This document shows, piece after piece, positions 6,389 to 43,255 of a DNA stretch of 64,000 nt (positions are counted from its first letter, which is position 1; the number at the start of each line of letters is the position of its first letter). The stretch is from contig LSRY02000013.1 in the NCBI GenBank assembly GCA_001643675.2, forward strand, positions 1,240,001-1,304,000, given 5' to 3'. The position numbers and the translations under genes were made by a program. Source of the DNA: Monocercomonoides exilis PA203. Taxonomy: Eukaryota; Protista; Preaxostyla. The notes under the pieces are model-generated. The model was given only the letters and a program-made list of their open reading frames with translations. It was not told the DNA's origin and searched no databases.

Positions 6389-7969
6389 AGAAAAAGGGTC
6401 AGGATAAAATTATAACCCTAAATGCAAATCTCTCTCCATTCCCAACGAGATAATCCTGTTTGATGGAATATTCAAATCAACAAAGTTTTATCCATTATCG
6501 TTGCAACTGTCCCAATAACAACAATTTAAATACCATTGTTTATTTGTGATTTTTCAACAAAAATGGAAAACAAACGATTGTCACAATATTTCCCGTTAAG
6601 TTATCAAGAAATCAATAAGTGAAAACAAATAATTGTCAAGGCCAAATCTTTTTTTTATTATGAATCCTTTTTTTTCAAAACTCACTCAAATACTGTGATA
6701 GCAGCCTTTTAATCTTTTCCTTGGAACTTGTTGAATTGAAAATTAATATATTTCATTGTTAACCTTGTGAATGTGTTCTGAGCATTTGCCAAGTGAAAAA
6801 ATTGAATTGTTTTCTTTCTCTGAACAAAAAAACAACCATTTCTCCATTTATCAGTTGTGAAAACGTATCCTGAGAAAAAATGTCTTCTTCACAGACGATT
6901 AATGAAATAAAGTTTAACTCTCATTCGTTATCCAAATCAGTCACACAAAAATCTGTGGTTAATAAGCAGTAACCTTATCAGAAATTTTCACTGAATTGCA
7001 GACCCCATCGAGATTCGATGAAGCAGAAGGATAAGCAGAAATGAAATCAGAAGTTGAAAAATATGGAATTTGAGCATAAATGCTGATTGAGCTCGAACTT
7101 GAGACATTCCCTTCCAAAATGCTGATTTTTCAAAATGTTATGAGATTCTGAATTTCGACAAATTTTGAAGACAAAGGATAATTTTTTAAAACCGCATGTA
7201 AAATAGCTGATGCACTTTATAATTTATTCTTTTGATAGTCGCCCTGCAATGCTTCTTATTTGAAGTGTTTCTTCCTGATATAAAGCTGTGAATATATTTT
7301 TCCCATAAAAAAACAATTTGAAGTTGTATTATTTCAATCAAAGATCAACGAAATTTTCGTTTTTAAAATTTTTATTTTTTGACAACTCATTATTCGAAAT
7401 ATAACTTGTCTTATTTTGAATAAAAAGAGACAAATTTTCAGTCGTTTTAAAAAGTTTCATTTCATTTTTTTTCTATTGTTTTTTCAATTTATGTTTTGAT
7501 ATTTGGATAACGTTTATAAGAAAAAATGTGATCGAAATCATATAAAAGAATAAGTTGCAATCTTGAATTTCTGAAATATTAAAAGTTGGTTATGATATTT
7601 TCAATCAAAAGCTGGCAAGTGGAGTAGATCCTGGTACCAATGAGATCCTACCAACCATTTTCATAATTTTCATTTTTTAAAAATCTCTTCCAGGGTTAAC
7701 ACTAACCCTAATTTTGCTCCGTAAAACCCTTAATCACAACAATATCCAATGTTAACTTGTTTAATTCGTCAAAATCCTAAAACCTAATAAACACAATAAG
7801 AATATATCAAAGACTTTTTGTTATTAAGGGCATTGATCATGTGATACCATGATCTTTTCCATTTACCCAAAAGCTTGACAAATTTGGAAAATTTGAAACT
7901 ATCATATGTGTGATTTTTAATGAGATCATAAGATCGTTGTGTCGTTGATCTTTCATAAGAAACTTTTGT

Positions 7970-8502
7970 GGCATAGGTGAAATTTGGACCACTTTCATTT
8001 TGCACTTTTTCAAATTTTGAATATTATGGTGTTAATCTACATAATTAAATCAAGCGATTCAAGGAGGGAAATTTCGAAATTCGATCAAAAAATTTTCAAC
8101 AGAATTTTCAATTTTGGAGACCCATAATATTTTTATGTTGATCACTGCAAACTTAAAATTCGATTTCTTGGCTCCTAAAAGTTCAAATGTGTTTATTAAT
8201 TCAATTATACAAGTAAAAATATAGTGTTTAATGTTTGTCAAGATGTTTTTCCCTCTATATTATTTTTTATGTTGCTAATTCTTAAAAATAAGGTTATAAA
8301 AATTTACACAAGCATTCGTGCAGTTATTGATTTTCACTTTTAAGAAAAATAGATGACAACTTTATTGAAATGGATGTGCATGTTTGATTGTTGAATATTA
8401 TTTTTAATTATGAGATTTTCATTGGTACTTAATAATTTTTGATTTATATTTCATGAAAAGCATCGGATTCGTTGGAACTGAGATGAAACTCCGTTTATGA
8501 AA
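7970..8502 (+). repeat. Left inverted arm of element A
   Basis: Reverse complement of 13791-14323. The nearly identical 60-aa ORFs at 8059-8241(-) and 14052-14234(+) reflect this repeat. Confidence 0.95.
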
Positions 8503-9830
8503 TGATGAAAGTGTACATATATTTATGAGATTGTGTTAATATTGTTCGAGAAATGAACGATTCAGGCAGAATATTTGAACGATAGAAATATTAAAGGAAG
8601 CAGTAAAGAGAAGTTAAAGTCCGTTGCAATATGTCTGGGAGAAGAATGAGAGATAAAAGCTACACAAGCTGATGATTGGATGTGCTGCGATGCTGAGAAG
8701 AAAGATGCTCAGAGCTGATGGGAGTGACAATGAAAACAAAGGGTGTTGCACAAAGTTAGACGTGAATACTGGAGCTTGGTTATTGAGCTTGGTATTAATG
8801 GAAAGTCGGGCGAAGAGGATTACGAAGATGAATTATGGATTGCAGATATTGTGATGAGAAAATGAAATGGGGTGAGGAGTGTTTGCAGGTGTGATGATTA
8901 CACGCTTGGAAATGTTGTTGGCGATGTTGAAGGAGGTGACAGATACTATGTGTTTTGGAGCAGAAAGGATGAGAAAAGTAGACAGAAGAAATGAAAGAGA
9001 ATGGTGAGAGGCAGGCTGTGGGGAGTGAGGATGAAGCTGAGGAAAGGGTGATGGATGGACATATGCCCCATGGAGCAGATGTGTTTGTTGAGTTAGGTTG
9101 AGGGGCAGTTTTTTTATTGGAAGGGAGAGGAAAGAAGAGGGAGATGGAGAACATATGGAGGGTGTGTTGCTTGTTGTAACAAAAGAAGGAAAGTGAAGGA
9201 AAGGATGGAATTTGAATGATATAATGCACAGAGTGGATGGAAATTTATTCGAAAATTTACAAATAAATAGTTTTGTGAATTTTTTTGAGAGATTTCAAAC
9301 TCTGTATTCTCTGTTTTTTCTCCTCCACATTTTTGTTTACTTTTTCATTTCATATTTTTTCATTCATTGATGTTTGCAGTTTATTGTTGTTCGTGCAAAA
9401 TTATTATTTTCTTGTTTTTGACAAAGTTTTCACAACAAGCTCGATTATAACTATGTATAAATGTTTTATTATAGCTTTGCAAAGCTGCTGACCTTTGCAA
9501 ACGCATTTATAAAAGAAATGAGTGTGAATTAGCAAAAACTTGCTTGAATATAAAGCAATTGGTTCAATTATTCATCATTTTTAAAGTTTTTAAAAAGAAA
9601 AGAGAAATAAATAGCAATGAATAAACAGCGCATTTAATTAATTGGTAAAAAATCACAAAGCTGGTTCAAAAAAGATCTTCTTCCCAAATCACGAATTATG
9701 TGTCACTATCTACGTGTGTGATTCGATATTTGTGCTGCAGCGTCTGAATCGACTTTTTTTTCTTCAATAGCAATTACTGCAAACTGTGGTCAAGTGTGAA
9801 CAAATAACAATTCCACGATAGGACTCTTTA

Positions 9831-12044
9831 AGACATGGACAAAACCCGGGAATGTCTAATGAAAAACTCAAAAAAGAAAAAGTGAATAAATGAAATTGAT
9901 ATTGAGAATAACAAACGCTTTCATATTGCTCTTCAATTATTCGATGCTATCATTTTTTGAAAATATGAAAATTCAGATTTTTTTTAATAGAATGTTAGGA
10001 TAAAAAAGCCATTATGTTTGCTTTTTCTTGCAATATGTCTTCTTTTCATTCTTCATCGGAACTTTCAGAGGTTTTAGCCACTGCAGAATATAGAAAATTA
10101 AATTCAAAAGTAGAAAAAAATTAATTTTCTTCTTTCAAGAAAAGAGATTACACATAAAAGCATAATTTCATCTGGCTCAGTTTCTTCTTCAGCTCTATAT
10201 CGACATATCTCTTCTTTAAATCAGGGAAGAGATCTCCAACACAATGGCAGACCCAATTTGTTCAACAAAGATGAACAAGAAGAAATAGAAGACTGTGCCA
10301 AATCTCTTTTTCTTTCAACGGATAAAATTTCATTCAAAGATATCATCAAAATAGTTTGGTTTTTGTTTAAAAATATAAATTAACCTTTAATGATGTTGTA
10401 TTTTCAGGATGAACACGTCTTGCAAAGAAAAAATCGAAAAAAGGATGACAACAGCGAATTGGCAGAAATTAATGAAAAATTTGCAAGACGGTTCATTTAA
10501 AGAAGCAATGCCTTGCAAATGGAAAAACCAAAATCCATTGATGTGAAAAGGTTGCTTGCATCTTCAATGGAAAACATTTCAGCGTGGTTTTCATTGCTGG
10601 GGGACACAATAAGAACGAACAAAATTTGCTCCGATCTAATATTAAATATAGACGAAACAGGAGTCAGTTTGTGTCAATCTGATAACGATTTCGTAATCAA
10701 ACGATCAGATCAAGAAGACCCAATGTTGCACTCCCAACATCATCAGCCCAACGAAACATTGGTTTTCGGAGTGTTTGCAGATGGATCTTCTATTAATCCA
10801 GTGATGCTTTGGTCCTCAAAAACTGAACCAAAAGATCTTGCAGTATTAAAGTATCATCGACTTGAAATAGTTGCCAACGGAAGCTGGTGGATGACAAAAA
10901 ATGACTTTGAAAAATTCATGATGAAAAACATATTACCAACAGTTAACAAAAAAAGAGTTGAACTTCATGGATCGGAAGCATCGGCGCTAATTATAATGGA
11001 TGGGCATTCGTCGAGGCTTTGCTTGCCTGTTATCACATGGTGTCGTGAACATTCAATCGAAATTATTATTCTTCCTTCGCACACCACACACTTGACACAA
11101 CCGCTTAATCGGTATGTGTTTGCGCGATTCAAAAAAAGACTGTATTCATCTTTTCAGCCTCCAACCGAAAGCGGAATATCGTCATATCGAAAAGCTCTTG
11201 TGCCAACATTGGCAGATGCTGTGAGTGCTGCGTAAAAACCTAGAACTATCAAAAAATCGTTCAACGCTTGCGGGATTGAGCCATTTGATCCATCAATTGT
11301 TTAAGACCGACTGCCCAATCAGTCTTCAATTACAAAAATATCTTCAATTAGTTCATCGGAACATGCTCCAAATGGAGTCTTTAACATGAAAGTTTAAACA
11401 AGTGATGATTTTGTTCAGGAGAACGAACAAAGTGAAAAAGGTTTGAAAATTTTTATAAAATTTGAATGAAATGATCATCGAGTTTATTCTTATTTTATTG
11501 TTCCGAGAAAAAGATAAAAGTGAATTGTGTAACTTGAAAAACAGTCTGAAAAAGCAAATGTCAGAGAGGAAAGCAAACGAGGATAAATGCGATGAGAAAA
11601 CAAAATTCAAGAGGTCAGAACAAACTCGTGAAGAAGAAATAGATGAATCTTTTTTGTTTTCAGGAGAAAAACGAAAAAGAAATCAAGTGTCCGAAAAAAA
11701 ATGGGGAAAACTATTTTATTTCAGCTGAAAGCGTCTTTTCTTTTCAAACAATTTTGTTTTGCAACTTGATAATAGAATTTTTTTTCATTTTGTTCGATTA
11801 TTTTTATATGGTTTCATATCAGCCAATGTAACTTTTCGATAGTGATTTTGAATGCTCGTTTCATTTATAATCAAGAAAAACTTATATAAAAAACATCGCA
11901 TGAATATTTTGACAAATATATATTTATTTTTGTTAATTCAAAAAAAAAAAAAAGAAATCAGGAAGTGGAGTCAATTGTTGAAATACTTTTCAATTGATTG
12001 GACATTCCCGGGTTTTGTCCGTTTCCCGGGTTTTGTCCATGTCT
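9831..12044 (+). mobile_element. Degenerate pogo-like transposon nested in element A
   Basis: Left TIR AGACATGGACAAAACCCGGGAA at 9831; right end TTCCCGGGTTTTGTCCATGTCT ending at 12044. TA on the left, TT on the right. Confidence 0.8.
10035..11330 (+). pseudogene. Disrupted DDE_1 transposase
   Basis: Motifs LNIDETG, IMDGHSSR and THLTQPLN (3rd Asp replaced by Asn). In-frame stops at 10498 and 11233. Intron-like GT..AG at 10354-10407. Confidence 0.8.
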
Positions 12045-12046
12045 TT

Positions 12047-13651
12047 TCATTCAAACCTGGGGTCAACCTTAATTTTGGCAAGCATAAATATTTTTTCATC
12101 AGCAAACATCACAAACACTCTTGGTGATAAACTTCTCATCGAGTTGTGATCGATCCCCAAATGACCCACCTCCAGCTGACCAGAAGATATGCTAAACAGC
12201 GTTATCGAAGAGAGTGGATTCGTCCCAATCACACTCGCTGTCTTCCCTCTCCCAACAACAGAAATCTTCTTTTCCCCAACACTGATTGTCACTCCTTCAC
12301 TCACATGCTTCCCACCCAACACTGTGATTGTCGAGCTCAGCTGCGCCATGCTCGACCCCACTGCATGCTCCACGGTCTTGCAAGGCGCAGACTCACTCAT
12401 CCCACACAGATTGCTCGTGTCATCCCCACTCACCCCAACAAACCGATCCTTCATTCCCTCCTTCAACCATCCCTTCTTTTCTGTATGTTGAAGGCTATTA
12501 CCATTATAGCACACTCTCTTCTCATTTGTATTCGTTGTGTACGATTCATAGAACGGGCTATTCGAAGAGAAGAGATTGCTTCCATCTGAAAAATACACAT
12601 CGTGGCCACATAGATTGGAATTTGTGCATCTGCAATCATGGAAAAAGAAGAAATAGCAATAAATATTGTTGCTTGGAGCTGTTTGTTGGTTTGGCCAGAA
12701 ATCCATTCCTCCACCATATGACACAGCCGAACAAGAAATAAACTGCAGACTCCTCATTTTGAATGCGGCCGGAACATTTTGACAATACATCCCTCCGCCA
12801 AATCTATCTGTCCGTGAGCACAAAGTGAAAAAACACTCAAACACACAAGCGCTCTTCCCGTTCTCACTTTCTGTTCCAATGCAGGAAGATCCAGAAATAT
12901 TAAAATAATCGAGATAAAGTCCTCCTCCCCAATTACTTGCATTACATTTCTGAAATTCACACCCGCTGATCCGAACACATGTTGAAATTCCATACACATA
13001 CAATCCTCCTCCGTAATGGTTTTGCGCTGTACAGGCATTGAACACATTATTTTCGATACGCACAGATTTTATTGTATGACACATAATCCCTCCACCACGG
13101 CTGTATGCAAGACAGTTATTAAACAGACAATTCGAAACAGAAAGTTCTCCAGAATTGAGATTGTACATGCAGATGGCCCCTCCACTCGATACCCCGTCCG
13201 TAACGGAATCGCTTTCTCCTGTTGTCCTTGATCCGTTCCACTCACACCATATAAATGTATTCGCTCCATTTTCTGTTTCGTTCTGTCTGTCTGGAGTTAG
13301 CTTATGATCTGCATTTCCTTCACATTTAACATTTCTTGTTCGACAACATCCAATGAATGAAGTGTTTGAAACAGCCAAAGAGGCCAAGGGATTGTTGAGG
13401 GAATGAACAATCCCTCCATCATACACATCGCAAACAGAAGAAAATGAGCAGCTGCTCATTAAACAAGTGGTTTGGGTTGACATTGTGGTTGAAGACAAAC
13501 ATGCCTCATTTGCTGTTGAGATGTTGAAAAAAGTGAGTCTGGAGAGGGATATTAGGGGTATTGGGAAGATGAGAAAAAATTTGCAAAAAGATGAGAAATG
13601 CAACACGATAAAGAAATTATTCCTTTCCATTCTTTTGATTTTCATATGCAT
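12047..13651 (-). pseudogene. Fragment of the N-terminal beta-helix region of the giant receptor family
   Basis: Collinear with the 34292-43255 protein from ISLS.L.FFNISTAN to about SP.V.V (shared SCSFSSVCD.YDGGIVHSLNNP, WCEWNGS.TTGESDS, QHTEK). No TM or tail; both ORF ends run into non-homologous sequence. Confidence 0.8.
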
Positions 13652-13790
13652 GTTAGCATCTTGTCAAAAAATATCCCATTAAGCTTGAGTACTTCTTCTC
13701 TTTTTTTTCAACAACTGCTTTCGCAAAGAATAAAGCGTATCAAATATGAATAAATTCTTTTTGTTATTCTCTTCAATATAATTTTATTTT

Positions 13791-14323
13791 TTTCATAAAC
13801 GGAGTTTCATCTCAGTTCCAACGAATCCGATGCTTTTCATGAAATATAAATCAAAAATTATTAAGTACCAATGAAAATCTCATAATTAAAAATAATATTC
13901 AACAATCAAACATGCACATCCATTTCAATAAAGTTGTCATCTATTTTTCTTAAAAGTGAAAATCAATAACTGCACGAATGCTTGTGTAAATTTTTATAAC
14001 CTTATTTTTAAGAATTAGCAACATAAAAAATAATATAGAGGGAAAAACATCTTGACAAACATTAAACACTATATTTTTACTTGTATAATTGAATTAATAA
14101 ACACATTTGAACTTTTAGGAGCCAAGAAATCGAATTTTAAGTTTGCAGTGATCAACATAAAAATATTATGGGTCTCCAAAATTGAAAATTCTGTTGAAAA
14201 TTTTTTGATCGAATTTCAAAATTTCCCTCCTTGAATCGCTTGATTTAATTATGTAGATTAACACCATAATATTCAAAATTTGAAAAAGTGCAAAATGAAA
14301 GTGGTCCAATTTTCACCTATGCC
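13791..14323 (-). repeat. Right inverted arm of element A
   Basis: Reverse complement of 7970-8502. Confidence 0.95.
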
Positions 14324-14972
14324 ATTTTTATTGAAATTTTATGTTTTCATTATAAAATATATGTTTGATAATCTGAAAAGAGATCGTTGAAAAAGATGAA
14401 AACATGCAATCAATCGATGATATTTTTTTTAAATATTTGTAATAATAAAAATGAATATAAACTTTTGATAATTCAATTATCTTTTTTCCGTTAAAGAAAA
14501 TATATCGGATTGGAGAAGAGAAAAAGAACATTTTCTGAAGGATAGTAGTGGAAATTTAGAACGGTTCCAAGGTCAGTGACAGCGGGGAATTGATGATAGA
14601 ATTTGGCAAGATGACTTTTTTTGAAAAGCATCTTTGAAGGAAATTCATTTTTCAAAATAACATTGGGTGGTTTTTTTATCCGGACAAAAATTTTAATAAT
14701 TAGTTTAATCAACTCACTTTTAATATTTTGTTAGTTGTTTTTCGTATATAAGGACAAGTCAACAGTTTGAAATTTTGATTAAATTACTAGACCTAATCTC
14801 TGATGGGGGGGAGTTAGCTCCTCCATCTCTGATTTGTGCCTCCGCTGAAGAGATTAGGAAATAGCAAGGGGTATTACTTAGATAGAATTTGATCGAATTT
14901 TTTTAGATTTTTTTTTCATTTCAAAAAAATTTTATTAAAAATAAATAAAATCATAACAAATATTAAATTTGG

Positions 14973-34138: not shown

Positions 34139-34291
34139 TACGAAGCAACAATATTAATAATGCTTTTCAAAAGTTTCAATTTGTGTATTTCTATTCAATT
34201 ATATTTTTTTTTTGCAAATTTCTCTATCTTTAACTCCCTTAATAAATGAAAACAGATATCAATTTTTCTAATTGTAGATCTTGTGATAGAG

Positions 34292-37200
34292 ATGCAGTTA
34301 TCGGTTATATTTTTCACATTCCTAGCATGCATTTTTAACGGCAATGCTGAAGAGAATAAGTATTCTATCGAGCAACAACCTGACGATGAGCGCGAAAGCG
34401 AGAAGATATTTTTAAATCCTCAGGTGCACAGTCATCTTGGATATTCATCGATACCTAAAACATTTTACAACAATTCATTTCATTGCATGAGAAAATTTCA
34501 GCAGAGCACCAGCGTTGGAAACACTGAAGTTGAAGGAGAAATCGAAAAGATCAATTTCAGAAATAATATGAAGGAAACCAGAAACATTTCGCAGACTTTT
34601 GCACCAGAAACATCAAGCAAATATTTTATGCGCTATTCCAAAAAATACTTCAGTGCGCACATCCAAAGTGAGATTGAGGGATGCATTTGTGGATGGAACT
34701 CATCCATTGAATTGTGGGAGATTGAGCTGGTGGGAGGTGAGTGCGGGGGTGTGATGCGTGGAAGGAAGGGGAGTGTGGTTGTTGTGAGAGGGTGCGTTGT
34801 GGGGATGGGGAAGGACAATGAGGCAGGGGCATTTGATCTGAGTGGGAGCATTGGGGTGTTGGCAAACATCACATTGAAAGGGTGGGGAAGAGAGGGAGAG
34901 ATATATTCAGGCAGACTGTTTGGAGGGAAGGGAGATGGAGGGGAGAAGAGTGGAGGTGAAGAAAAAGAAGGAGGAGAAAGAGGAAGGGGAAGAGGAAGAG
35001 AAGGAGATGGTGATGGAGAAGACATTGAAGGGAGTATTTCGGTGAGTGAATCACGATTCTCTTCTTTTTGTGTCTCATCGGCTCCATTCCTCTCATCACC
35101 TTCAATATCCCTTATATCCCTCTCCAAATTATCATTTTTCAATATCTCAACAGCAAATGATGCATGCTCATCTCCAACAGCTTCATTTTCCCAAACCTCA
35201 TGTCTGATGAATAGTTGTTCATTTTCGTCTGTTTGTGATGCATATGATGGCGGGATTGTTCATTCCCTCAACAACCCCTATGCCACTCTGACTGTTTCAA
35301 ACACTTCATTCATTGGATGTTATCGAGTAAGAAATGTTGAACATATTGGAACTGAAGAAGAAAAGAAACATCCAGGGAGGCAAAACATTACAGAGAATGG
35401 AGAAAATACATTTGTTTGGTGCGAATGGAACGGATCAAAGACAACAGGAGAAAGTGACTCATGGTCGGATGGAATATCGAGTGGTGGGGCCATCTGCATG
35501 TACAGTCAATTGTCGGCAGCTGTTTCAGTTTCGCATTGTGCATTCAATGAATGTGTCGCGCATTGGTGCGGTGGAGGTATTAGTTGCTATTATATTAGAT
35601 CTGTTGAGATTGAAAACAATTCGTTCAACTCATGCACAGCTCAAACTTATTTAGGAGGAGGAATGTGCATTGTGTCAATTTCATCGTGTGTTCGGATCAG
35701 CGGATGTGAATTCCAGAATTGCAAAGCAATTGGCTATGGTGGAGGGCTTCATCTCGAAAATTTTCAGGTTTCTGGAATAGGGTGTGTTGGAAATGAAAGT
35801 GGAGAAGGGGAGAGCGCGTGTGTGTTTGACTGCTGTTTCACTTCATGCTCAATCACAAATAATTATGGAGGAGGCATGCGTTGTTACAATTTTCCTGTTC
35901 AAGTTAAGATTAGAAGCATTCAATTTATTTCATGTTCTGCATTAAGAGAAGGCGGAGGATTAGGCTTTGATCCAAATCGAGCAACAGCACCTGATGATGG
36001 AATCTATTGTTATTTTTTGTTTTTTCACGAATGCAAATGTTCTGCAAATACGCTATATGGGCATGATGTGATGTACTATGATCGCTATGGTCTTTTTAAT
36101 TCTTCAAACAATCCTTTCTATGAATGCTACACAACAAATGAAAATGACAAGAGAGTGTGTTATGGATATGATTATTCGAGTACAGGGAGTTGGAAATATC
36201 AGCACACAGAAAAGTGGGATTGGTTGAAGGACAAGACGATTTATGTTTCAGTGAAAGGGAATGATTCATCTCTTCTTTGCGGGGCAAATGAAACATTTCC
36301 TTGTCTGACAGTGAAAAAGGCGTTTGAGATGTGCGAAATACAGATAAGCTTGGCAATCACGTTGATGGAAGGGAATCATGTGAGTGAGACAACAACTATT
36401 GAGATTGGAGAAAAGAAGATTTTAGTCATTGGGACGGGCAAAGATAAGAGTTCGATTGGAACAGGAGCACTTTCATCGGTAGGAGCGTTGTTCAGTGTGA
36501 CAACAGGTAACCTTGGTTTATTGCACATGAAAGTTGATTGCAACTCAAATGCAAGTCCTTCTTCACCGAGTGTGGTTGTGGTGTCTGATGGGGGTGGGTC
36601 ACTCTCGTTGGAGGATGTTGTGATCACCACGAGTAAAACAGGAGACTATGTGATGTCGTCGTCAGTGTTTGTGGTGCCGCTGTCGCAGCTGTCGATGGTT
36701 GGTGTGGAGATCAAAGATATGAATGTCTCAAAACCATTGTTTTCCGAGCCGAATCTCTCTTCTCCTTCTTCTTCTTCTTCATTGTCGTCATCTGCACTGT
36801 ATCTGACAGCCACAGCATCAAGAGATAGCGTGCTTGCGAATGCAAAGGTGACGAATGTGAAGTTGACTGAAGGAGATGGGGTTGTTGTAGCAAAGAGTGT
36901 GAAGGTGGGAGAGACATTTGTGGTCAAGAATATGACAATTGAGGATTGCGAGTGCAAGGATGGAAGTGGTGGCGGGATCAAGGTTGAGATGGAAACAGAT
37001 ACATGCAAGCTTCAGGTTGAAAGAACAACAGCAATCAAGAGATGCAGAAGTGGCAAATATGGAGGAGGAATGATGCTGTATCTGGCTGAAAACTCGATTG
37101 ACTTCTCAATTGTGTCAGTTGACTTTTCAGGGTGTTCTGCTTCATTGGGAGGGAATTATGTGTTTGTGAATGGGAGCAATTCAGCGAGCTGGGGAATAAC

Positions 37201-40200
37201 AACAGAAAAGCTGGATGTCCAACATGACGATTCAAAATACAATGAGCTTGTGGGATATGATCGGAGTGACACAACAATGGGGCTGTTCCCATTGAATGTA
37301 TATTTGGACAGATATCCAGATGCAGCACATGTGGGGAAGGGGAAGAATGGGCTGGGTGGATACAACTCGTGGTTCTGTGGGTTTGATTATTATCCGTGTG
37401 CAACCATCACCCATGCAACGCAGGTGAGATATCCCGGCACAAACAAGAAGATCGAATTGGATTCAGGATATGAGCTTGCTGAAGAGGTTGGAATGACAGA
37501 TGGCCATGAATGGGAGATTTCATGTGCAACAAAAGGAATGGAGGTTGGGGTGAAAGCACCAGAGAATTTTGAGTCGTCATGTCTGATTGATGTTCAGAGC
37601 ATATGTTCAGTGAGAAACATCAAATTCTGTATTCCATCTGCTCTGTCTTGTGCATCATCATCATCTCTGATCACATCCAACTCCACACTCCTCACGCTCA
37701 CTGATTGTTCTGTTGTTTGTTCCTCTGAGAATTCCATTGGATACAGTTTTGTGAATGTGATTGGGGGAAAAGTGAAAGTGGAGGGATTGGTGATCACAGA
37801 AACATTGATATTTGGAGAACATTCACTGATTGAGTTTGGTGAAGGGGTGGAATCAGTTGTGTTTTGTGGATGTGAGGTGAACAACATTGAGAAGAGAAGT
37901 GGAGATGGAGGATGGGTGAGTGGGGTGGTTGGGCCAGAGAGAGATGAGGGGAAGAATGGGATAATTGTGATTGAATCGTGTGTTGTGAAGGGGTGCAGGT
38001 GTGCTGGTGGAAGAGGAGGAGGGATGAGTGTTGTTGTGAAGGGGGAAGGGAGTGTTATTGTGAATGGGAGTTGTGTGATTGATGGGTGTGAGGCGAAGGG
38101 TTCAGGGGAGAGTTCAGATGGGAAAGGGGGAGGGAGAGGGGGAGGGATGATGATTGTGATGGAGAGCAGGGATGGTTCAATGAAAATGGAATCTGGAAGA
38201 GAGGGTTTGTTTGTGTTTGGAGAGAATAACAAAGCTTCATATGGGAAAGATGTGTTTGTTGGTTGTGGTGGAGGAGTGTTATTGGAATCGAAAGTGAATG
38301 GGAGTTCATTTGCATTTTTTGATTATCGTGTGATTCCAACAGATGTGTTGAAGTTGTGTGGGAGTGAGGATGGGAGAGAAGGGGAAGTGATTCCGCTGTT
38401 TGTGTATTTGTGTTCAATTGGCTCGAAGTTGAGAGTTGATGGGAGAGGAGAGAGGGCACTGGATCAGAGCCATTGTGGGTTTGAGGAGTTTGGGTGTTTG
38501 ACGATTGACTATTGTGTTGAGAAGAGAGCGAGCAGCAATGTGAATGAAATCGAAGTTGCCTCAGAATCATGGATAAAGAATGAGATGAAAGTGGCATTAT
38601 TTGGTGTGAGTGTTTCAGGGAAAGAAGAAGGGATGAGGGTGATTGTGAGAGATGAAGGATCGATAAGCCAGAATAACCTTATTGAGTGCACAAAATCATT
38701 TGAGATGAGACATTTGTCATTTGTGCTGAATGAAGAGATGAATGGGAGGAGAAGTGGATTTATCCACTCCTCCTCATCATTATCAACCATCACAATGACC
38801 AGCTGTTCAATCTCATTTGGAAATGATGAAATGATTGGATACAATGTGATATGTGTTGAGGGAGGAGGGCTGATTGTGGATGGATTTGTGATGGAAGGGG
38901 GAGTGACACTGAAGATGAATGGGAAATCGCCAATTGTTATTTCAAATGGAGTTGAATTGGAGATGAATCACAGTCGAATGAATGGAGTGGGAGTTACAGG
39001 TGGAAATGGAGGAGGAGGAGGAGGATGTTTGAATGTGGAGATGAAAGGAGGAAGTGCAAAAATTGAAGAATGCAATTTGTCATCAGTGTGTTCAGGGGGG
39101 AGCGGGATGAAAGGGGGAGGGATGAAGATATCAGTGGGGAAGGGAGGGAGGTTGGAAATGAAAAATGTGAAATATTCAGGGTGTGAAGTGCCAAGAGAGG
39201 ATATTGAGGAGGGAGGGAGAGGAATGGGAGGAGGGATGTTTGTGAAGCTGGCAGATGAGATGGGAACATTTGTGATGGAAGGGATGGAATTTGTGGGATG
39301 CGATGCTTGGAAGGGGAAGAATATGTTTGTTTCTGGATGGGATCTGAGAGAGATTGTGAATGAGGAGCACCTGAAATGGGAGATGAGTGAAAGGGGGTTG
39401 AGATCGTTGGATGGGTTGTGTGGATGGGAGAGGATGACAACAGGAGAGGAGGGATATGTGATTCCTTTGGTTGTGTATTTGTGGAGAAACTGGAGTGGGG
39501 ATGGGTTTGTTTCTCGAGAGAAAGGAGGAGACTTCAGTGGGTGTGGGTATTCAGAAGCACCCTGCTCATCGATTGACCACTTGATATCACTTCGATATCC
39601 AATTCTTGGAGAAGGGGATACACACATCAGGATTGTGGGATCAGGGCTGCTGAGTCATTCCATTTCATTTTCATCATCAATATCAGAGTCACAAAAAGTG
39701 GTGATTGAAGGAACAAAGAAAGGGACAGGAGTGACGCTCAGTGATGAAGATGAGAATGATCTGGATAATGGCTCAATGATATCCTCGAATGTGAGTCTGT
39801 CATTTGTGAATGTGTCATTCACCAAGCCAGCCATCACAACCCATCATGAAGCGTTGATTGAATCCTCTGGAGCAAACACATTATTGTCGGTTTCAGATTG
39901 TTCATTTGGCCCATGGAGAGGGGTGGCAGAAAGTTTTGGATATTATGTGATGAGAGTGGATGGGGGGAGTGTATTGATTGAGAAATGCACGATGAATTTG
40001 ATTTCTGATTTGAAAGGGTTGATTGCCTTCAGGCCTAGTGCAGCTGAGGTGACTGTTCAGAATATGAACATTTCATTTGTCGATGTGACAGAAAGAAGCC
40101 TGATTTCGATGATGGAAGAGGCGGACAAGATGAATGGAGAAAAGAAGGTTTTTTCAAATGGGAACAGACCAGTTTTGAGGGTTGTTGGATGCTCATTTTC

Positions 40201-43200
40201 CAATATCACGAATGAAGGGATTGGAGCGAGTGTTGTTGATGTGGGATCATTTGAGGATGGAGTGGAGTGTGTGGTGGATGAATGTTCGATGTCGAGTTGC
40301 AAGAGTGGTTTGAGCATTGAAGGAGGGGGGATGAAAGTGGTGCTGAAGAGCGAAGAAACAGTTTTTAAAATCAACGATAGCTCTTTTTCGATGTGCAAGT
40401 GCTCGAAGGAATCAGGGTGTGGAGGAGGGCTGTTCATTGATGGGTCTGACCCACATGCGAATTATGGAAATGAAAGTCAGATTCCGCCTCTGAATTTCAA
40501 GATTGTGAACATCCTGTTTGTGATGAATGAGGCACATGTTGGGAAAGACATATTTGTCAGATGCCACTCAATTGCTCATCAGATCAACGAAACACTGTTT
40601 GCACTGAACTACAACCAGGAATCACTGAACTCAAACAACTCGATCTGTGGGAGAGATGCTTCGAGCGAGGGAGATGTTGATCTGATTCCGCTGATCACAT
40701 TCTATTATGGGCTTCAAGTGTTTCTTAGTTCTACAGGGACGGATGGGAGAAGATGTGGGGCTCAAATCAATCCATGTTCCAGTATCAACTGCGGGATTGA
40801 CCACATCCAGGAAGGGGTGATGAATGCGATTCTGATTGATGGGGAAGGGACTGTTTCGGGAGAATGTGCAATTGAAGATCTGGTTGTGACTTCATTCAAA
40901 AAGGCACAGGCGATTGTGAAGCTGAAATCCAAGATTGAAAAATCGACAGAGAAGGATTGCATCATGGAGTTTGTGAATGAATGTGGAGTGGAGAGGTGCT
41001 CATTCCAGTTTGAAGATGGATTTGAATCAATTCACAATTATCTTTTGAAGGTGAAGAATGGATCACTGGAGATACAGAAATGTGAATTCTTCTCCTCTAC
41101 CGATGAACTGAAATTGAACAATTCAGTTATGAGTGTTGAAAGCGGAGAACTGATGATATTTGATTCAACATTCAGAGATGTTCATTCTGCAAGATCGGTG
41201 CTTTTATTCAACAAAGAATCCTATGTGATAATTGATGAAACAAGAATATTGAATGTGGAATGTGAGAAAGATGTTGTGAGTATTGGAGGAAAAGCGAAGG
41301 TGGAGATGAAAGAAATGGAAGCTGAAAATGTGACTCTGTTGTCGAGAAGGTGCGTGATTGCGATGGAAGACGCTGAGCAAGAGGTGAGCATGCTGAACTG
41401 CTCGTTTGGTAAATATGTGAATTCGGTTGATAAGGGAAGCATGATGCAGATCAGGAATTCCAAGGATGTGAGGGTTGAGATATGTGTGTTTGATGGAGAA
41501 AAAGAAGCAGATGCAGTCAATGAAGAACAAGAAAGAGTAGAGAAATTATGCAAATGGAATGGGTCATTGGTTGATATTGAGAGGAGCAATGTGGAGATGA
41601 AGGAAACAACAATCAGAAACAGCAAGGCAGGTGGGTTGTGGGCGAGTGGAGGAAGTTTAATGATTGAAAAAGGAGAATTTGAGAACAACAACCCAGAGAT
41701 TGAAGGATATCCATCAGCTAGAAGGAATGTGATCTGTGCAGGGAATGGGGGATTGAATGTTGTTTGTTTGAAAGGGGGAGATGGACTGAAAGATAACTCA
41801 TCGCTTTGGATGTTGAATGATGGGTGCAGCTTTGAAGGAATCGCAGGAGAAAGGTTATCATCATTTTTCATCCCAGTTCTGGAAGAAGTGAAGAATACAA
41901 CGCAGCCAACAGGAGAAATGGAACTGATCATTCATGGGAAGTTGCTTCTTCCGTGCAATCTGTCAGTGAAGATAAGCATGAAAGACGGGGAAGTTGAGCG
42001 TATCCAAACACAAAAGATCGAAGAAGATGGGTTTGTATCAGAGAACGAGGTGCATTTAAGAATTTCATCAGAACTGATGAAAGTGATGGAGAAGAAAACA
42101 GAAGTGAGTGTGTGGATGGTGTTTGGAAAAGATGAATCATGTTTTTCGAATGGAATTGTGGTGATAAACAAGAGTGAGTCTCAATCAAAAGGAGATGAGA
42201 ATGAGAATGAAGGAGATGACAATATCAATAAAGGAGAATCGAATAATGAATGGATGTTGATTGTTATTGTTGTGATGGGTGTGCTGTTTGTGATATTCAT
42301 GTTTATATTTGCTGCAGTTGTTGTGCTTTTGCGAAAGAAACTGAGGAAAGCCGAAAAGAGAGTTGAAAAAGAGAGATTAGAAAACGAGCAGATAATGGAG
42401 AAGCTTGAGAAGAGAAGAAGGGAAAACAATGGAGGAAGCTTTGAGATGAGTGAAATGCCACCCACATTGCTGGAAGGGATGACAAGTCAGATTCCACTTC
42501 TGATTGACAACGATGAAGAAGATCTTCCAGATCCTCCTTCAACGAACAGCGATGAAATTCTGAATGAAAATGATCTGCCCGATCTGGTACCTCCATTGCC
42601 ATTTTCAGAGAATGCTTCTGCTTCTGGAATACCTCAATCTCATCCATTCAACGTGATATCAGCGAAGAAGCCATTTCGAGAAAAGGAGAAAAGGAACATC
42701 AAAGCATTGCATTCGGTGATTCATTCAGTTCAAGGTGATTTCACGCTGGGAACAAGAGCGATGGATGTTGTTGATGGGAAGGAGGTGGTTTTGGCAGTGG
42801 CAGAGCTGTTTGAGCATTTGATTTCAGTTGGAGACGAAAGGGTGGAAATGATGGCAAGACAGCTGTGCCCATATGCGATATTTGTTGAAGAAGGAAACGA
42901 AAATGAAATATACCTATTGACAGAAGAACTGACTGATGAAAAGCAGAAAGAAGAAATGAAGCGATGGAAGGCACCTGAAGCGGGAGATGAAGAAGAGGGA
43001 ATTGAAAAGGCAGTTGTTTTTTCACTTGGACTGATTCTGCATGAGATGACAACAGGGGAAGTGCCATTGAGTGAATGCAATGCAGAAGAAGCACAGGAGA
43101 TGATAAGGGATGGAGTGCGACCGCTGACAGAAGGAATCGAAGGAGAGGAGCTGATTGAGGTGATGGAGAAGATGTGGACAGATGAGCCAAATGATAGACC

Positions 43201-43255
43201 CAGTTTGACAGAAGTGAAAAAATCAATAAAGAAAATAATGATAGAGGAAGGATGA
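34292..43255 (+). CDS. Giant (~2990 aa) intronless type I membrane receptor-like protein: signal peptide, Pmp/pectin-lyase-like beta-helix repeats, TM helix, TKL-like pseudokinase tail (type B)
   Basis: Signal-like MQLSVIFFTFLACIFNGNA. Repeated F..C.A...GGG[ILM] rungs and CG....PC.[TS][IV] modules. TM segment WMLIVIVVMGVLFVIFMFIFAAVVVLL followed by RKK. Tail motifs RWKAPE, VFSLGLILHEMTTGEVP and RPS. Confidence 0.88.
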   Translation: MQLSVIFFTFLACIFNGNAEENKYSIEQQPDDERESEKIFLNPQVHSHLGYSSIPKTFYNNSFHCMRKFQQSTSVGNTEVEGEIEKINFRNNMKETRNISQTFAPETSSKYFMRYSKKYFSAHIQSEIEGCICGWNSSIELWEIELVGGECGGVMRGRKGSVVVVRGCVVGMGKDNEAGAFDLSGSIGVLANITLKGWGREGEIYSGRLFGGKGDGGEKSGGEEKEGGERGRGRGREGDGDGEDIEGSISVSESRFSSFCVSSAPFLSSPSISLISLSKLSFFNISTANDACSSPTASFSQTSCLMNSCSFSSVCDAYDGGIVHSLNNPYATLTVSNTSFIGCYRVRNVEHIGTEEEKKHPGRQNITENGENTFVWCEWNGSKTTGESDSWSDGISSGGAICMYSQLSAAVSVSHCAFNECVAHWCGGGISCYYIRSVEIENNSFNSCTAQTYLGGGMCIVSISSCVRISGCEFQNCKAIGYGGGLHLENFQVSGIGCVGNESGEGESACVFDCCFTSCSITNNYGGGMRCYNFPVQVKIRSIQFISCSALREGGGLGFDPNRATAPDDGIYCYFLFFHECKCSANTLYGHDVMYYDRYGLFNSSNNPFYECYTTNENDKRVCYGYDYSSTGSWKYQHTEKWDWLKDKTIYVSVKGNDSSLLCGANETFPCLTVKKAFEMCEIQISLAITLMEGNHVSETTTIEIGEKKILVIGTGKDKSSIGTGALSSVGALFSVTTGNLGLLHMKVDCNSNASPSSPSVVVVSDGGGSLSLEDVVITTSKTGDYVMSSSVFVVPLSQLSMVGVEIKDMNVSKPLFSEPNLSSPSSSSSLSSSALYLTATASRDSVLANAKVTNVKLTEGDGVVVAKSVKVGETFVVKNMTIEDCECKDGSGGGIKVEMETDTCKLQVERTTAIKRCRSGKYGGGMMLYLAENSIDFSIVSVDFSGCSASLGGNYVFVNGSNSASWGITTEKLDVQHDDSKYNELVGYDRSDTTMGLFPLNVYLDRYPDAAHVGKGKNGLGGYNSWFCGFDYYPCATITHATQVRYPGTNKKIELDSGYELAEEVGMTDGHEWEISCATKGMEVGVKAPENFESSCLIDVQSICSVRNIKFCIPSALSCASSSSLITSNSTLLTLTDCSVVCSSENSIGYSFVNVIGGKVKVEGLVITETLIFGEHSLIEFGEGVESVVFCGCEVNNIEKRSGDGGWVSGVVGPERDEGKNGIIVIESCVVKGCRCAGGRGGGMSVVVKGEGSVIVNGSCVIDGCEAKGSGESSDGKGGGRGGGMMIVMESRDGSMKMESGREGLFVFGENNKASYGKDVFVGCGGGVLLESKVNGSSFAFFDYRVIPTDVLKLCGSEDGREGEVIPLFVYLCSIGSKLRVDGRGERALDQSHCGFEEFGCLTIDYCVEKRASSNVNEIEVASESWIKNEMKVALFGVSVSGKEEGMRVIVRDEGSISQNNLIECTKSFEMRHLSFVLNEEMNGRRSGFIHSSSSLSTITMTSCSISFGNDEMIGYNVICVEGGGLIVDGFVMEGGVTLKMNGKSPIVISNGVELEMNHSRMNGVGVTGGNGGGGGGCLNVEMKGGSAKIEECNLSSVCSGGSGMKGGGMKISVGKGGRLEMKNVKYSGCEVPREDIEEGGRGMGGGMFVKLADEMGTFVMEGMEFVGCDAWKGKNMFVSGWDLREIVNEEHLKWEMSERGLRSLDGLCGWERMTTGEEGYVIPLVVYLWRNWSGDGFVSREKGGDFSGCGYSEAPCSSIDHLISLRYPILGEGDTHIRIVGSGLLSHSISFSSSISESQKVVIEGTKKGTGVTLSDEDENDLDNGSMISSNVSLSFVNVSFTKPAITTHHEALIESSGANTLLSVSDCSFGPWRGVAESFGYYVMRVDGGSVLIEKCTMNLISDLKGLIAFRPSAAEVTVQNMNISFVDVTERSLISMMEEADKMNGEKKVFSNGNRPVLRVVGCSFSNITNEGIGASVVDVGSFEDGVECVVDECSMSSCKSGLSIEGGGMKVVLKSEETVFKINDSSFSMCKCSKESGCGGGLFIDGSDPHANYGNESQIPPLNFKIVNILFVMNEAHVGKDIFVRCHSIAHQINETLFALNYNQESLNSNNSICGRDASSEGDVDLIPLITFYYGLQVFLSSTGTDGRRCGAQINPCSSINCGIDHIQEGVMNAILIDGEGTVSGECAIEDLVVTSFKKAQAIVKLKSKIEKSTEKDCIMEFVNECGVERCSFQFEDGFESIHNYLLKVKNGSLEIQKCEFFSSTDELKLNNSVMSVESGELMIFDSTFRDVHSARSVLLFNKESYVIIDETRILNVECEKDVVSIGGKAKVEMKEMEAENVTLLSRRCVIAMEDAEQEVSMLNCSFGKYVNSVDKGSMMQIRNSKDVRVEICVFDGEKEADAVNEEQERVEKLCKWNGSLVDIERSNVEMKETTIRNSKAGGLWASGGSLMIEKGEFENNNPEIEGYPSARRNVICAGNGGLNVVCLKGGDGLKDNSSLWMLNDGCSFEGIAGERLSSFFIPVLEEVKNTTQPTGEMELIIHGKLLLPCNLSVKISMKDGEVERIQTQKIEEDGFVSENEVHLRISSELMKVMEKKTEVSVWMVFGKDESCFSNGIVVINKSESQSKGDENENEGDDNINKGESNNEWMLIVIVVMGVLFVIFMFIFAAVVVLLRKKLRKAEKRVEKERLENEQIMEKLEKRRRENNGGSFEMSEMPPTLLEGMTSQIPLLIDNDEEDLPDPPSTNSDEILNENDLPDLVPPLPFSENASASGIPQSHPFNVISAKKPFREKEKRNIKALHSVIHSVQGDFTLGTRAMDVVDGKEVVLAVAELFEHLISVGDERVEMMARQLCPYAIFVEEGNENEIYLLTEELTDEKQKEEMKRWKAPEAGDEEEGIEKAVVFSLGLILHEMTTGEVPLSECNAEEAQEMIRDGVRPLTEGIEGEELIEVMEKMWTDEPNDRPSLTEVKKSIKKIMIEEG

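Follow-up and report, generated by a model that had tools for sequence, protein, structure and literature searches.

A 64,000-nucleotide stretch of the genome of the oxymonad Monocercomonoides exilis PA203 (contig LSRY02000013.1, positions 1,240,001 to 1,304,000; hereafter the window) contains a large gene at 34283..43255 on the + strand whose product carries, near its N-terminus, five repeat rungs in which variation is concentrated in the same few registers beside each Gly-Gly-Gly (GGG) corner. We propose, with a probability of roughly 60%, that the stripe formed by these registers is a putative binding site, and that the family to which the gene belongs is a germline repertoire of specificities recombined by gene conversion. 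In this proposal the five rungs would be part of a membrane-distal beta-helix 'head' on a giant type I receptor with a dead-kinase tail, each 28-residue rung combining a framework of conserved residues that face inward (Cys, Ile, Phe, Asn) and the GGG corner with a hypervariable end of turn T3, hypervariable outward residues of beta-sheet PB1 and a hypervariable start of turn T1, rich in Tyr, Trp, Arg, His, Ser and Asn. The stripe would be ~25 Å long, on the face that beta-helix enzymes and tailspikes use as their ligand groove. Its putative ligands would most likely be glycans or other surface polymers, either of the bacteria on which M. exilis, a phagocytic bacterivore (PMC12308965), feeds or of its host's gut, and old diversity would be kept and reshuffled by segmental conversion among more than 100 head copies, full-length and truncated.

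The pattern was first drawn from two sequences. The original prediction held that positions 35480-36230, which are in frame with the open reading frame (ORF) 34283..43255(+) and encode amino acid residues (aa) 400-650 of its product, align to a fragment at ~12490-13200 of the window through a conserved framework, with the residues flanking each GGG replaced. A BlastP match between aa 1-1000 and the ORF at 12047..13651 on the - strand bears this out (298/514 identities, 58%, E = 0); all five of the quoted flank pairs (AHWC-GGG-ISCYY/AYSR-GGG-IMCHT, QTYL-GGG-MCIVS/QNHY-GGG-LYVYG, AIGY-GGG-LHLEN/ASNW-GGG-LYLDY, TNNY-GGG-MRCYN/TDRF-GGG-MYCQN and ALRE-GGG-LGFD/AVSY-GGG-MDFW) are present in the alignment, as are the framework motifs, which equal the family consensus. 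This second sequence, an open frame of 534 aa, is a truncated head copy; its homology to the gene covers aa 258-769, with 57% identity over aa 340-706. When aa 340-706 were searched against all six frames of the M. exilis genome, there were 1888 first-look candidates, 111 of which were scored; all 111 matched with E-values below 1e-158 and 63–74% identity, and 109 were stop-free over the 367 codons. After duplicates and copies with stops were dropped, 99 unique copies were aligned, and these are the basis of the per-site results given below. The tree and codon tests excluded nine copies that were exact duplicates and two, L051 and L078, that had an internal stop, and the alignment designated A1 was made without six loci whose extended match held a stop. 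The family includes dozens of full-length genes, 2700–3100 aa long and spread across many contigs.

Per-site entropy showed that the two-sequence pattern generalises to the 99 copies, and that the positions of highest entropy flank the GGG in every rung, the common register that had been claimed. Across the five rungs the residue immediately before the GGG (-1) reaches 2.6–3.2 bits, -2 reaches 2.0–2.9 bits and -3 reaches 1.5–3.0 bits, and residues 2, 4 and 5 after the GGG have about 2–3 bits. When averaged over the four regular 28-residue rungs, the stripe registers (-3 to -1, +2, +4 and +5) have 2.41 bits, compared to 1.33 bits for the other variable registers and less than 1 bit for the framework. 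In the same four rungs, register -1 ranked 1st, 1st, 1st and 3rd among the 28 registers, and register -2 ranked 2nd, 2nd, 3rd and 5th. The ten residues at -2/-1 form a signature that takes 95 different forms in the 99 copies. All five turns are on the + strand: the first GGG is at aa 430-432 (35570..35578) with hypervariable flanks at aa 427-429, 434, 436 and 437; the second at aa 458-460 (35654..35662) with flanks at aa 455-457, 462, 464 and 465; the third at aa 486-488 (35738..35746) with flanks at aa 483-485, 490, 492 and 493; the fourth at aa 529-531 (35867..35875) with flanks at aa 526-528, 533, 535 and 536; and the fifth at aa 557-559 (35951..35959) with flanks at aa 554-556, 561 and 563. 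As the variable sites share a register in every rung, their stacking along the helix axis must follow.

The residues found in the stripe are as distinctive as its position, and the aromatic and Arg-rich character first noted in two sequences holds across the 99 copies. At -2/-1, Tyr makes up 22.6% of residues, Trp 6.0%, Arg 7.6% and Lys 0.2%, compared to 5.3% Tyr, 0.3% Trp and 3.3% Lys at other variable sites, and to 3.5% Tyr, 1.4% Trp and 16.9% Lys at the neutral equilibrium calculated from the base composition of four-fold sites. These values bear on an alternative, namely that constraint is relaxed: an exposed turn beside the GGG would accept any side chain, its residues would drift neutrally and the stripe would have no function. 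Such drift would agree with a stripe dN/dS (omega) of ~1 (0.8–1.25 in the unbiased estimates and 0.8–1.0 in the two-rate class test described below), and outward positions of solenoid proteins do generally vary. However, drift would leave unexplained why Tyr is six times and Trp four times as frequent as the neutral expectation while Lys is almost eliminated. It is also at odds with the eight downstream GGG rungs, where the same registers are conserved: in 11 full-length proteins, -2/-1 has 0.42–0.54 bits in these rungs over a background of 0.67, compared to 2.1–2.3 bits over a background of 1.05 in the head rungs of the same proteins. The variability of the stripe is therefore not a general tolerance of the fold. 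In addition, the two remaining faces are conserved at their outward positions (omega values of 0.1–0.56). Taken with these observations, relaxed constraint appears unlikely.

The claim that the head is a beta-helix was supported by structural modelling. AlphaFold2 (AF2), run with the 99-row alignment, was confident for aa 400-642 alone (35480..36208, + strand; predicted local distance difference test (pLDDT) values of 63–90), the core that bears the variable stripe, and DSSP assigned strand triplets at 28-residue spacing from aa 404 to 600. VIA-align matched this model to tailspikes, alginate epimerases, PL6 lyases and GH110 with Z-scores of 13–17 over 200–250 aligned residues (root-mean-square deviation 3–4 Å). 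When the half-disordered model was compared to the PDB with Foldseek, nothing matched at E ≤ 0.001; unlike that run, VIA-align omits the low-confidence parts of the model. PF13229 (Beta_helix) matched five of the 99 members weakly (best E-value 2.3e-4), and one annotated paralog bears this domain; the receptor itself had no match to it at E ≤ 1. Based on the model and its structural matches, the core of the head domain is a right-handed parallel beta-helix of the pectin-lyase fold. In each rung, conserved and variable residues alternate along the strand that follows the GGG (registers 3–8), the turn after this strand takes insertions, a two-residue Asn turn links the remaining two strands, and the chain returns to the GGG through a long turn. 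The insertions are themselves variable; both are in the putative T1 position, one of 15 aa after the third GGG turn (aa 497-511) and one of 10 aa, within the loop at aa 564-574, after the fifth. The variable sites would thus fall where T3 ends, on the outer side of PB1 and where T1 begins. The binding groove of beta-helix enzymes has PB1 as its floor; its subsites come from the T1 and T3 loops, which also bear the specificity-determining positions, located in GH28 on T3 loops (PMC8952511); by analogy, the variable registers may fall on the usual ligand groove of right-handed beta-helices.

The gene that carries this head is a single uninterrupted ORF encoding 2990 aa, with its first ATG at codon 4 (34292). 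Its product starts with what has the appearance of a signal peptide (MQLSVIFFTFLACIFNGNA), continues into a long ectodomain in which we counted 19 GGG motifs, and ends with a transmembrane helix read from the sequence (aa 2658-2683; 42254..42331, + strand) and a kinase-like C-lobe (aa 2882-2981; 42926..43225, + strand) that matched positions 157-257 of the 258 in PF07714 with an E-value of 4.5e-12. Going by these sequence features, we describe the product as a giant type I membrane protein, in which a signal peptide is followed by a beta-helix ectodomain, a single membrane helix and a tail that resembles a kinase. No Pfam match to the ectodomain, and no leucine-rich repeat (LRR) family, was found with the whole protein or with aa 258-780, even at E ≤ 1, and no catalytic motifs of beta-helix enzymes were identified in the receptor. 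The kinase-fold C-lobe is C-terminal to the single transmembrane helix, as in a kinase-fold receptor tail. A motif scan of aa 2691-2990 found the G-loop, VAIK, HRD and DFG all absent, with APE at 2897 the sole motif left, and because of this the tail is probably a pseudokinase, through which the receptor may signal.

Other parts of the gene have histories of their own. The cytoplasmic tail (aa 2700-2990; 42300-43255) is 73–86% identical to the tails of two other genes, L105 and L108, whose middle regions are only 52–57% identical to that of the 34283..43255 gene, and against those of its sister genes L099 and L100 the identity is 21–36%. These matching tails on unlike middles, and unlike tails in sister genes, show that tails and ectodomains have been recombined. 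At the opposite end, within aa 1-256 (34283-35050), the first ~200 aa have diverged between sister genes beyond the level seen in the stripe region (15–35% identity), with a synonymous divergence (dS) that is above 2 or not computable. A Gly/Glu/Arg-rich low-complexity linker at aa ~205-250 closes this N-terminal part, and AF2 gave no confident structure for aa 1-256.

Rates of substitution give a more guarded view of selection on the stripe. Among the copies, pairwise dS has a median of 0.94 and overall omega is 0.26 (0.319 under the GY model in IQ-TREE). A fixed-tree site likelihood grid with a constant synonymous rate placed omega above 1 (p < 0.01) at 16 of the 367 sites, seven of which lie beside a GGG (456, 457, 528, 535, 554, 555 and 561). 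With site-specific synonymous rates, only 490, 555 and 556 stay positive near a GGG; the 22 'positive' sites of this two-rate test were not relied on, as most had near-zero synonymous estimates. When pooled by register, omega was 1.61 at -1 and 1.27 at -2 with one rate, and 1.00 and 0.79, respectively, with two. Values of pN/pS of 2–4 (apparent 3.6) at patch sites in rung windows of low pS were rejected as a conditioning artefact, because 'rest' sites also rose in these windows, to 0.79. We relied instead on a split-half design, in which half of the framework codons pick the pairs and the other half measure pS, with each sequence used once per rung. This gave a pN/pS of 1.1 at -2/-1 (95% intervals of 0.82–1.46, 0.96–1.27 and 1.03–1.25 in three divergence bins), 0.8–0.9 at -3, 0.8–0.94 on the + side of the GGG and 0.31–0.36 at the remaining sites. 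The pace of change in the stripe is thus close to neutral and threefold that of the framework. As omega is near 1 despite clearly constrained residue types, there are hints of a positive component, and diversifying selection on the stripe is suggested. The original prediction, which had called this a diversifying recognition surface and named a dN/dS above 1 as what would support it, thus stands in part: the shared register, the composition, the conservation of the other registers and the restriction to the head all favor such a surface, as does the threefold excess over the framework, but pooled values at -2/-1 range from 0.8 to 1.6 by method and an excess over 1 is not established.

This last result is the first of several points that weigh against a selected binding stripe, since dN/dS is not clearly above 1 and the two-rate class test puts omega for the patch as a whole at 0.62. 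The site tests themselves are affected by a dS near saturation and by recombination, which breaks their assumption of a single tree. The assignment of PB1 and T3 follows from the order of strands and turns (PB1-T1-PB2-T2-PB3-T3), not from superposition, and there are more variable sites beyond the stripe, at aa 355-371, 390-398, 587-609, 662-663 and 700. Finally, expression evidence for the receptor gene is weak: 17–27% of the 31-mers of its first 4 kb are present in RNA runs of a 2024 metatranscriptome, and paralogs may contribute some of these.

The diversity of the head is old. Between sister genes dS is 0.12–0.25 for aa 900-2100 but 0.6–1.4 for aa 300-750, and N-terminal to aa 300 it exceeds 1.2. 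Because the excess divergence of the head is matched by excess dS, it reflects mosaicism and the age of the lineages, not rapid replacement of residues; the head carries much older lineages, having either escaped the homogenisation of the gene middle or been replaced. The contrast between these regions can also be seen in ~30 paralogs on the contigs C26 and C21, which are 88–92% identical with a dS of 0.12–0.25 over aa 780-2100 (36600-40500) and have heads of only 55–68% identity, i.e., the middle has been homogenised and the head has not.

Full-length and truncated copies are fully interspersed in the head tree (17 label changes, compared to 18.4 for shuffled labels), and the entropy profiles of the two classes are the same (rho 0.91), as is their framework omega (0.23). 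Perfect tracts of 70–600 nucleotides (nt) occur in pairs that are only 70–89% identical overall, which is the mark of segmental gene conversion and calls for caution with single-tree codon tests. Tracts of at least 70 identical nt were found in 96 of 3076 short-short pairs and in 16 of 1264 full-short pairs (the longest being 140 nt), and mid-length copies (open frames of 975–1350 aa) had tracts of up to 238 nt in three of 316 pairs. The frequency of such tracts raises the question of whether the pattern could be a mutational by-product, with GGG codons and framework acting as microhomology anchors between which flanks are swapped without any selection on the surface. Besides the tracts themselves, a somewhat raised synonymous rate at patch codons (alpha 3.7–7.7 compared to 2.3; pS 0.52–0.73 compared to 0.47) would agree with this, although raised synonymous counts at multi-hit codons are partly a path-averaging artefact. 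However, conversion only shifts existing variants and leaves the residue bias unexplained, tract coverage along the head domain is roughly even (10–25 per bin), and the downstream rungs, which have the same GGG anchors, are invariable. We regard a purely mutational origin as very improbable.

The truncated copies are of interest in their own right. Approximately 95 of the 111 scored copies are in open frames of 410–830 aa, grouped on three contigs. In the NCBI annotation, copies of this kind are uncharacterized proteins of 316–874 aa. They begin within the region homologous to aa 150-260, without a signal peptide, and many share an end point. As their frames are open at a dS of ~0.9, they are not in neutral decay. 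The three blocks with most scored copies are at 1.15–1.85 Mb of C80, 0.2–0.52 Mb of C53 and 0.02–0.17 Mb of C71, where copies often form convergent inverted pairs ~4–5.5 kb apart with identical scores. Within the window, two inverted arms of 534 nt that are 100% complementary (7969..8502 on the left and 13791..14324 on the right) flank 5.3 kb containing the truncated copy at 12047..13651 and a DDE_1 transposase remnant (10513-11232; PF03184, E-value 5.8e-11); the head copy adjoins one arm only, the right arm being just upstream of its 5' end. RNA unitigs of 39–88 nt, with a depth of up to 486, cover only family-conserved segments of the truncated copy (12200-13600), and the flanks at 8401-12200 and 13600-14400 had no RNA contig, though a DNA run covers all bins.

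Two further explanations draw on these arrays. The first is antigenic variation, in which the stripe would vary to escape host antibodies against the head. The variable part is indeed membrane-distal, and truncated open-frame arrays with mosaic tracts resemble donor archives. On the other hand, M. exilis has many full-length genes, each with its own head, in place of a single expression site or a handful, old diversity (dS 0.6–1.4) is combined with an omega of ~1, the Tyr/Trp-rich and Lys-poor makeup is typical of binding surfaces and not of decoy epitopes, and the organism is a commensal bacterivore; we consider immune evasion improbable. The second explanation is compatible with a binding repertoire, and holds that truncated open-frame head copies, both those in arrays and single ones such as that at 12047..13651, are a dedicated donor archive from which short tracts are copied into full-length receptor genes. 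We offer this as a doubtful extension, noting that in our sample no short copy comes closer than a dS of 0.36 to any full-length gene. If true, a lineage or clone would keep renewing its repertoire of beta-helix binding sites, for recognition and not for evasion, and the system would be a counterpart of the variable lymphocyte receptor (VLR) or vls cassette systems on another fold.

The named relatives were all M. exilis MONOS_ proteins. A profile search with the head identified 6414 proteins at E ≤ 0.001, 92 of these at E ≤ 1e-30. Ten matches from outside the top of the list that we looked up came from M. exilis, from multi-rung proteins of the oxymonad Streblomastix strix and from unnamed metagenome proteins. 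The S. strix proteins P0146, P0153 and P0155 are large, each with 15–20 separate stretches that match the rung part (E-values of 1e-59 to 1e-72). Such matches in a second oxymonad imply that the GGG-rung module is older than M. exilis.

Returning to the reading of the stripe as a binding site in a recombining repertoire, several known systems resemble it in part. The receptor belongs to the same genome and the same tail family as the M. exilis TKL proteins, the genome's largest gene family. The available text of the genome papers counts 332 protein tyrosine kinases, mostly TKL, that overlap 'unclassified repeats' making up 35% of the assembly, and in that text the ectodomain, variable head and truncated copies are not described (PMC6759080; PMC8767320); our literature search found no paper on the beta-helix head. 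Unlike the TKL family as published, the 34283..43255 gene has a tail without catalytic motifs. A family previously described only as 'tyrosine kinases' and 'unclassified repeats' would thus include, in an anaerobic gut protist, a variable beta-helix face joined to a dead kinase. Should bacterial or host glycans be what the stripe binds, the family would give this unicellular predator an extensive heritable repertoire for recognition, would account for about a third of the genome's 'repeats' and would be a natural source of rigid proteins that bind glycans. The positions that make up the stripe are precise enough for swap tests between paralogs.

Among proteins of similar architecture, chlamydial Pmp repeats (PF02415) likewise have rungs of Gly-Gly-small-hydrophobic and Phe-x-x-Asn/Cys type and form large surface-protein paralog families, and the first rung of the head reads GGAI...FNEC, the others having GGG[ILM] and F-x-x-C. 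We rejected filing the rungs under this family, as PF02415 matched neither the receptor nor any of the 99 members, and the M. exilis protein is a predicted eukaryotic type I membrane protein rather than an autotransporter. The pectin-lyase-fold proteins (e.g., tailspikes, polygalacturonases, alginate epimerases and PL6 lyases) have the same fold with three-strand rungs, and hold their substrate at the PB1 floor and the T3 and T1 loops, where the variable positions of the head would lie. Unlike these relatives, the receptor is eukaryotic and would be membrane-anchored with a kinase-like tail, and its head has an invariant GGG corner in each rung and more than 100 diverged paralogs in the genome. 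The donor-cassette systems, such as Borrelia vls, the 'functional pseudogenes' of Anaplasma msp2, Neisseria pilS and the trypanosome VSG arrays, share with M. exilis the arrays, the copies that are truncated at the 5' and 3' ends and kept open, and the segmental identity tracts between copies, although in M. exilis such tracts are rarer with full-length genes. They differ in that M. exilis has dozens of full-length genes instead of one expression site, and that no recent whole-cassette transfer was seen in our sample.

The likeness to lamprey VLRs and plant LRR receptors that was drawn at the outset holds for functional design only, as the fold is not that of LRR proteins. Lamprey VLRs, plant LRR receptor kinases and NLRs likewise combine a rigid repeat scaffold with variation in one register or face, aromatic-rich variable sites, a large repertoire and genomic partial cassettes. 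The M. exilis head, in contrast, is a beta-helix without LxxLxLxxN, its variable sites would be on a corner and outer strand and not on a concave sheet, and the kinase tail is probably dead. Animals and plants are known to have variable solenoid receptors built on the LRR scaffold; in M. exilis a right-handed beta-helix would carry this design of a fixed framework with one variable, aromatic-rich face.

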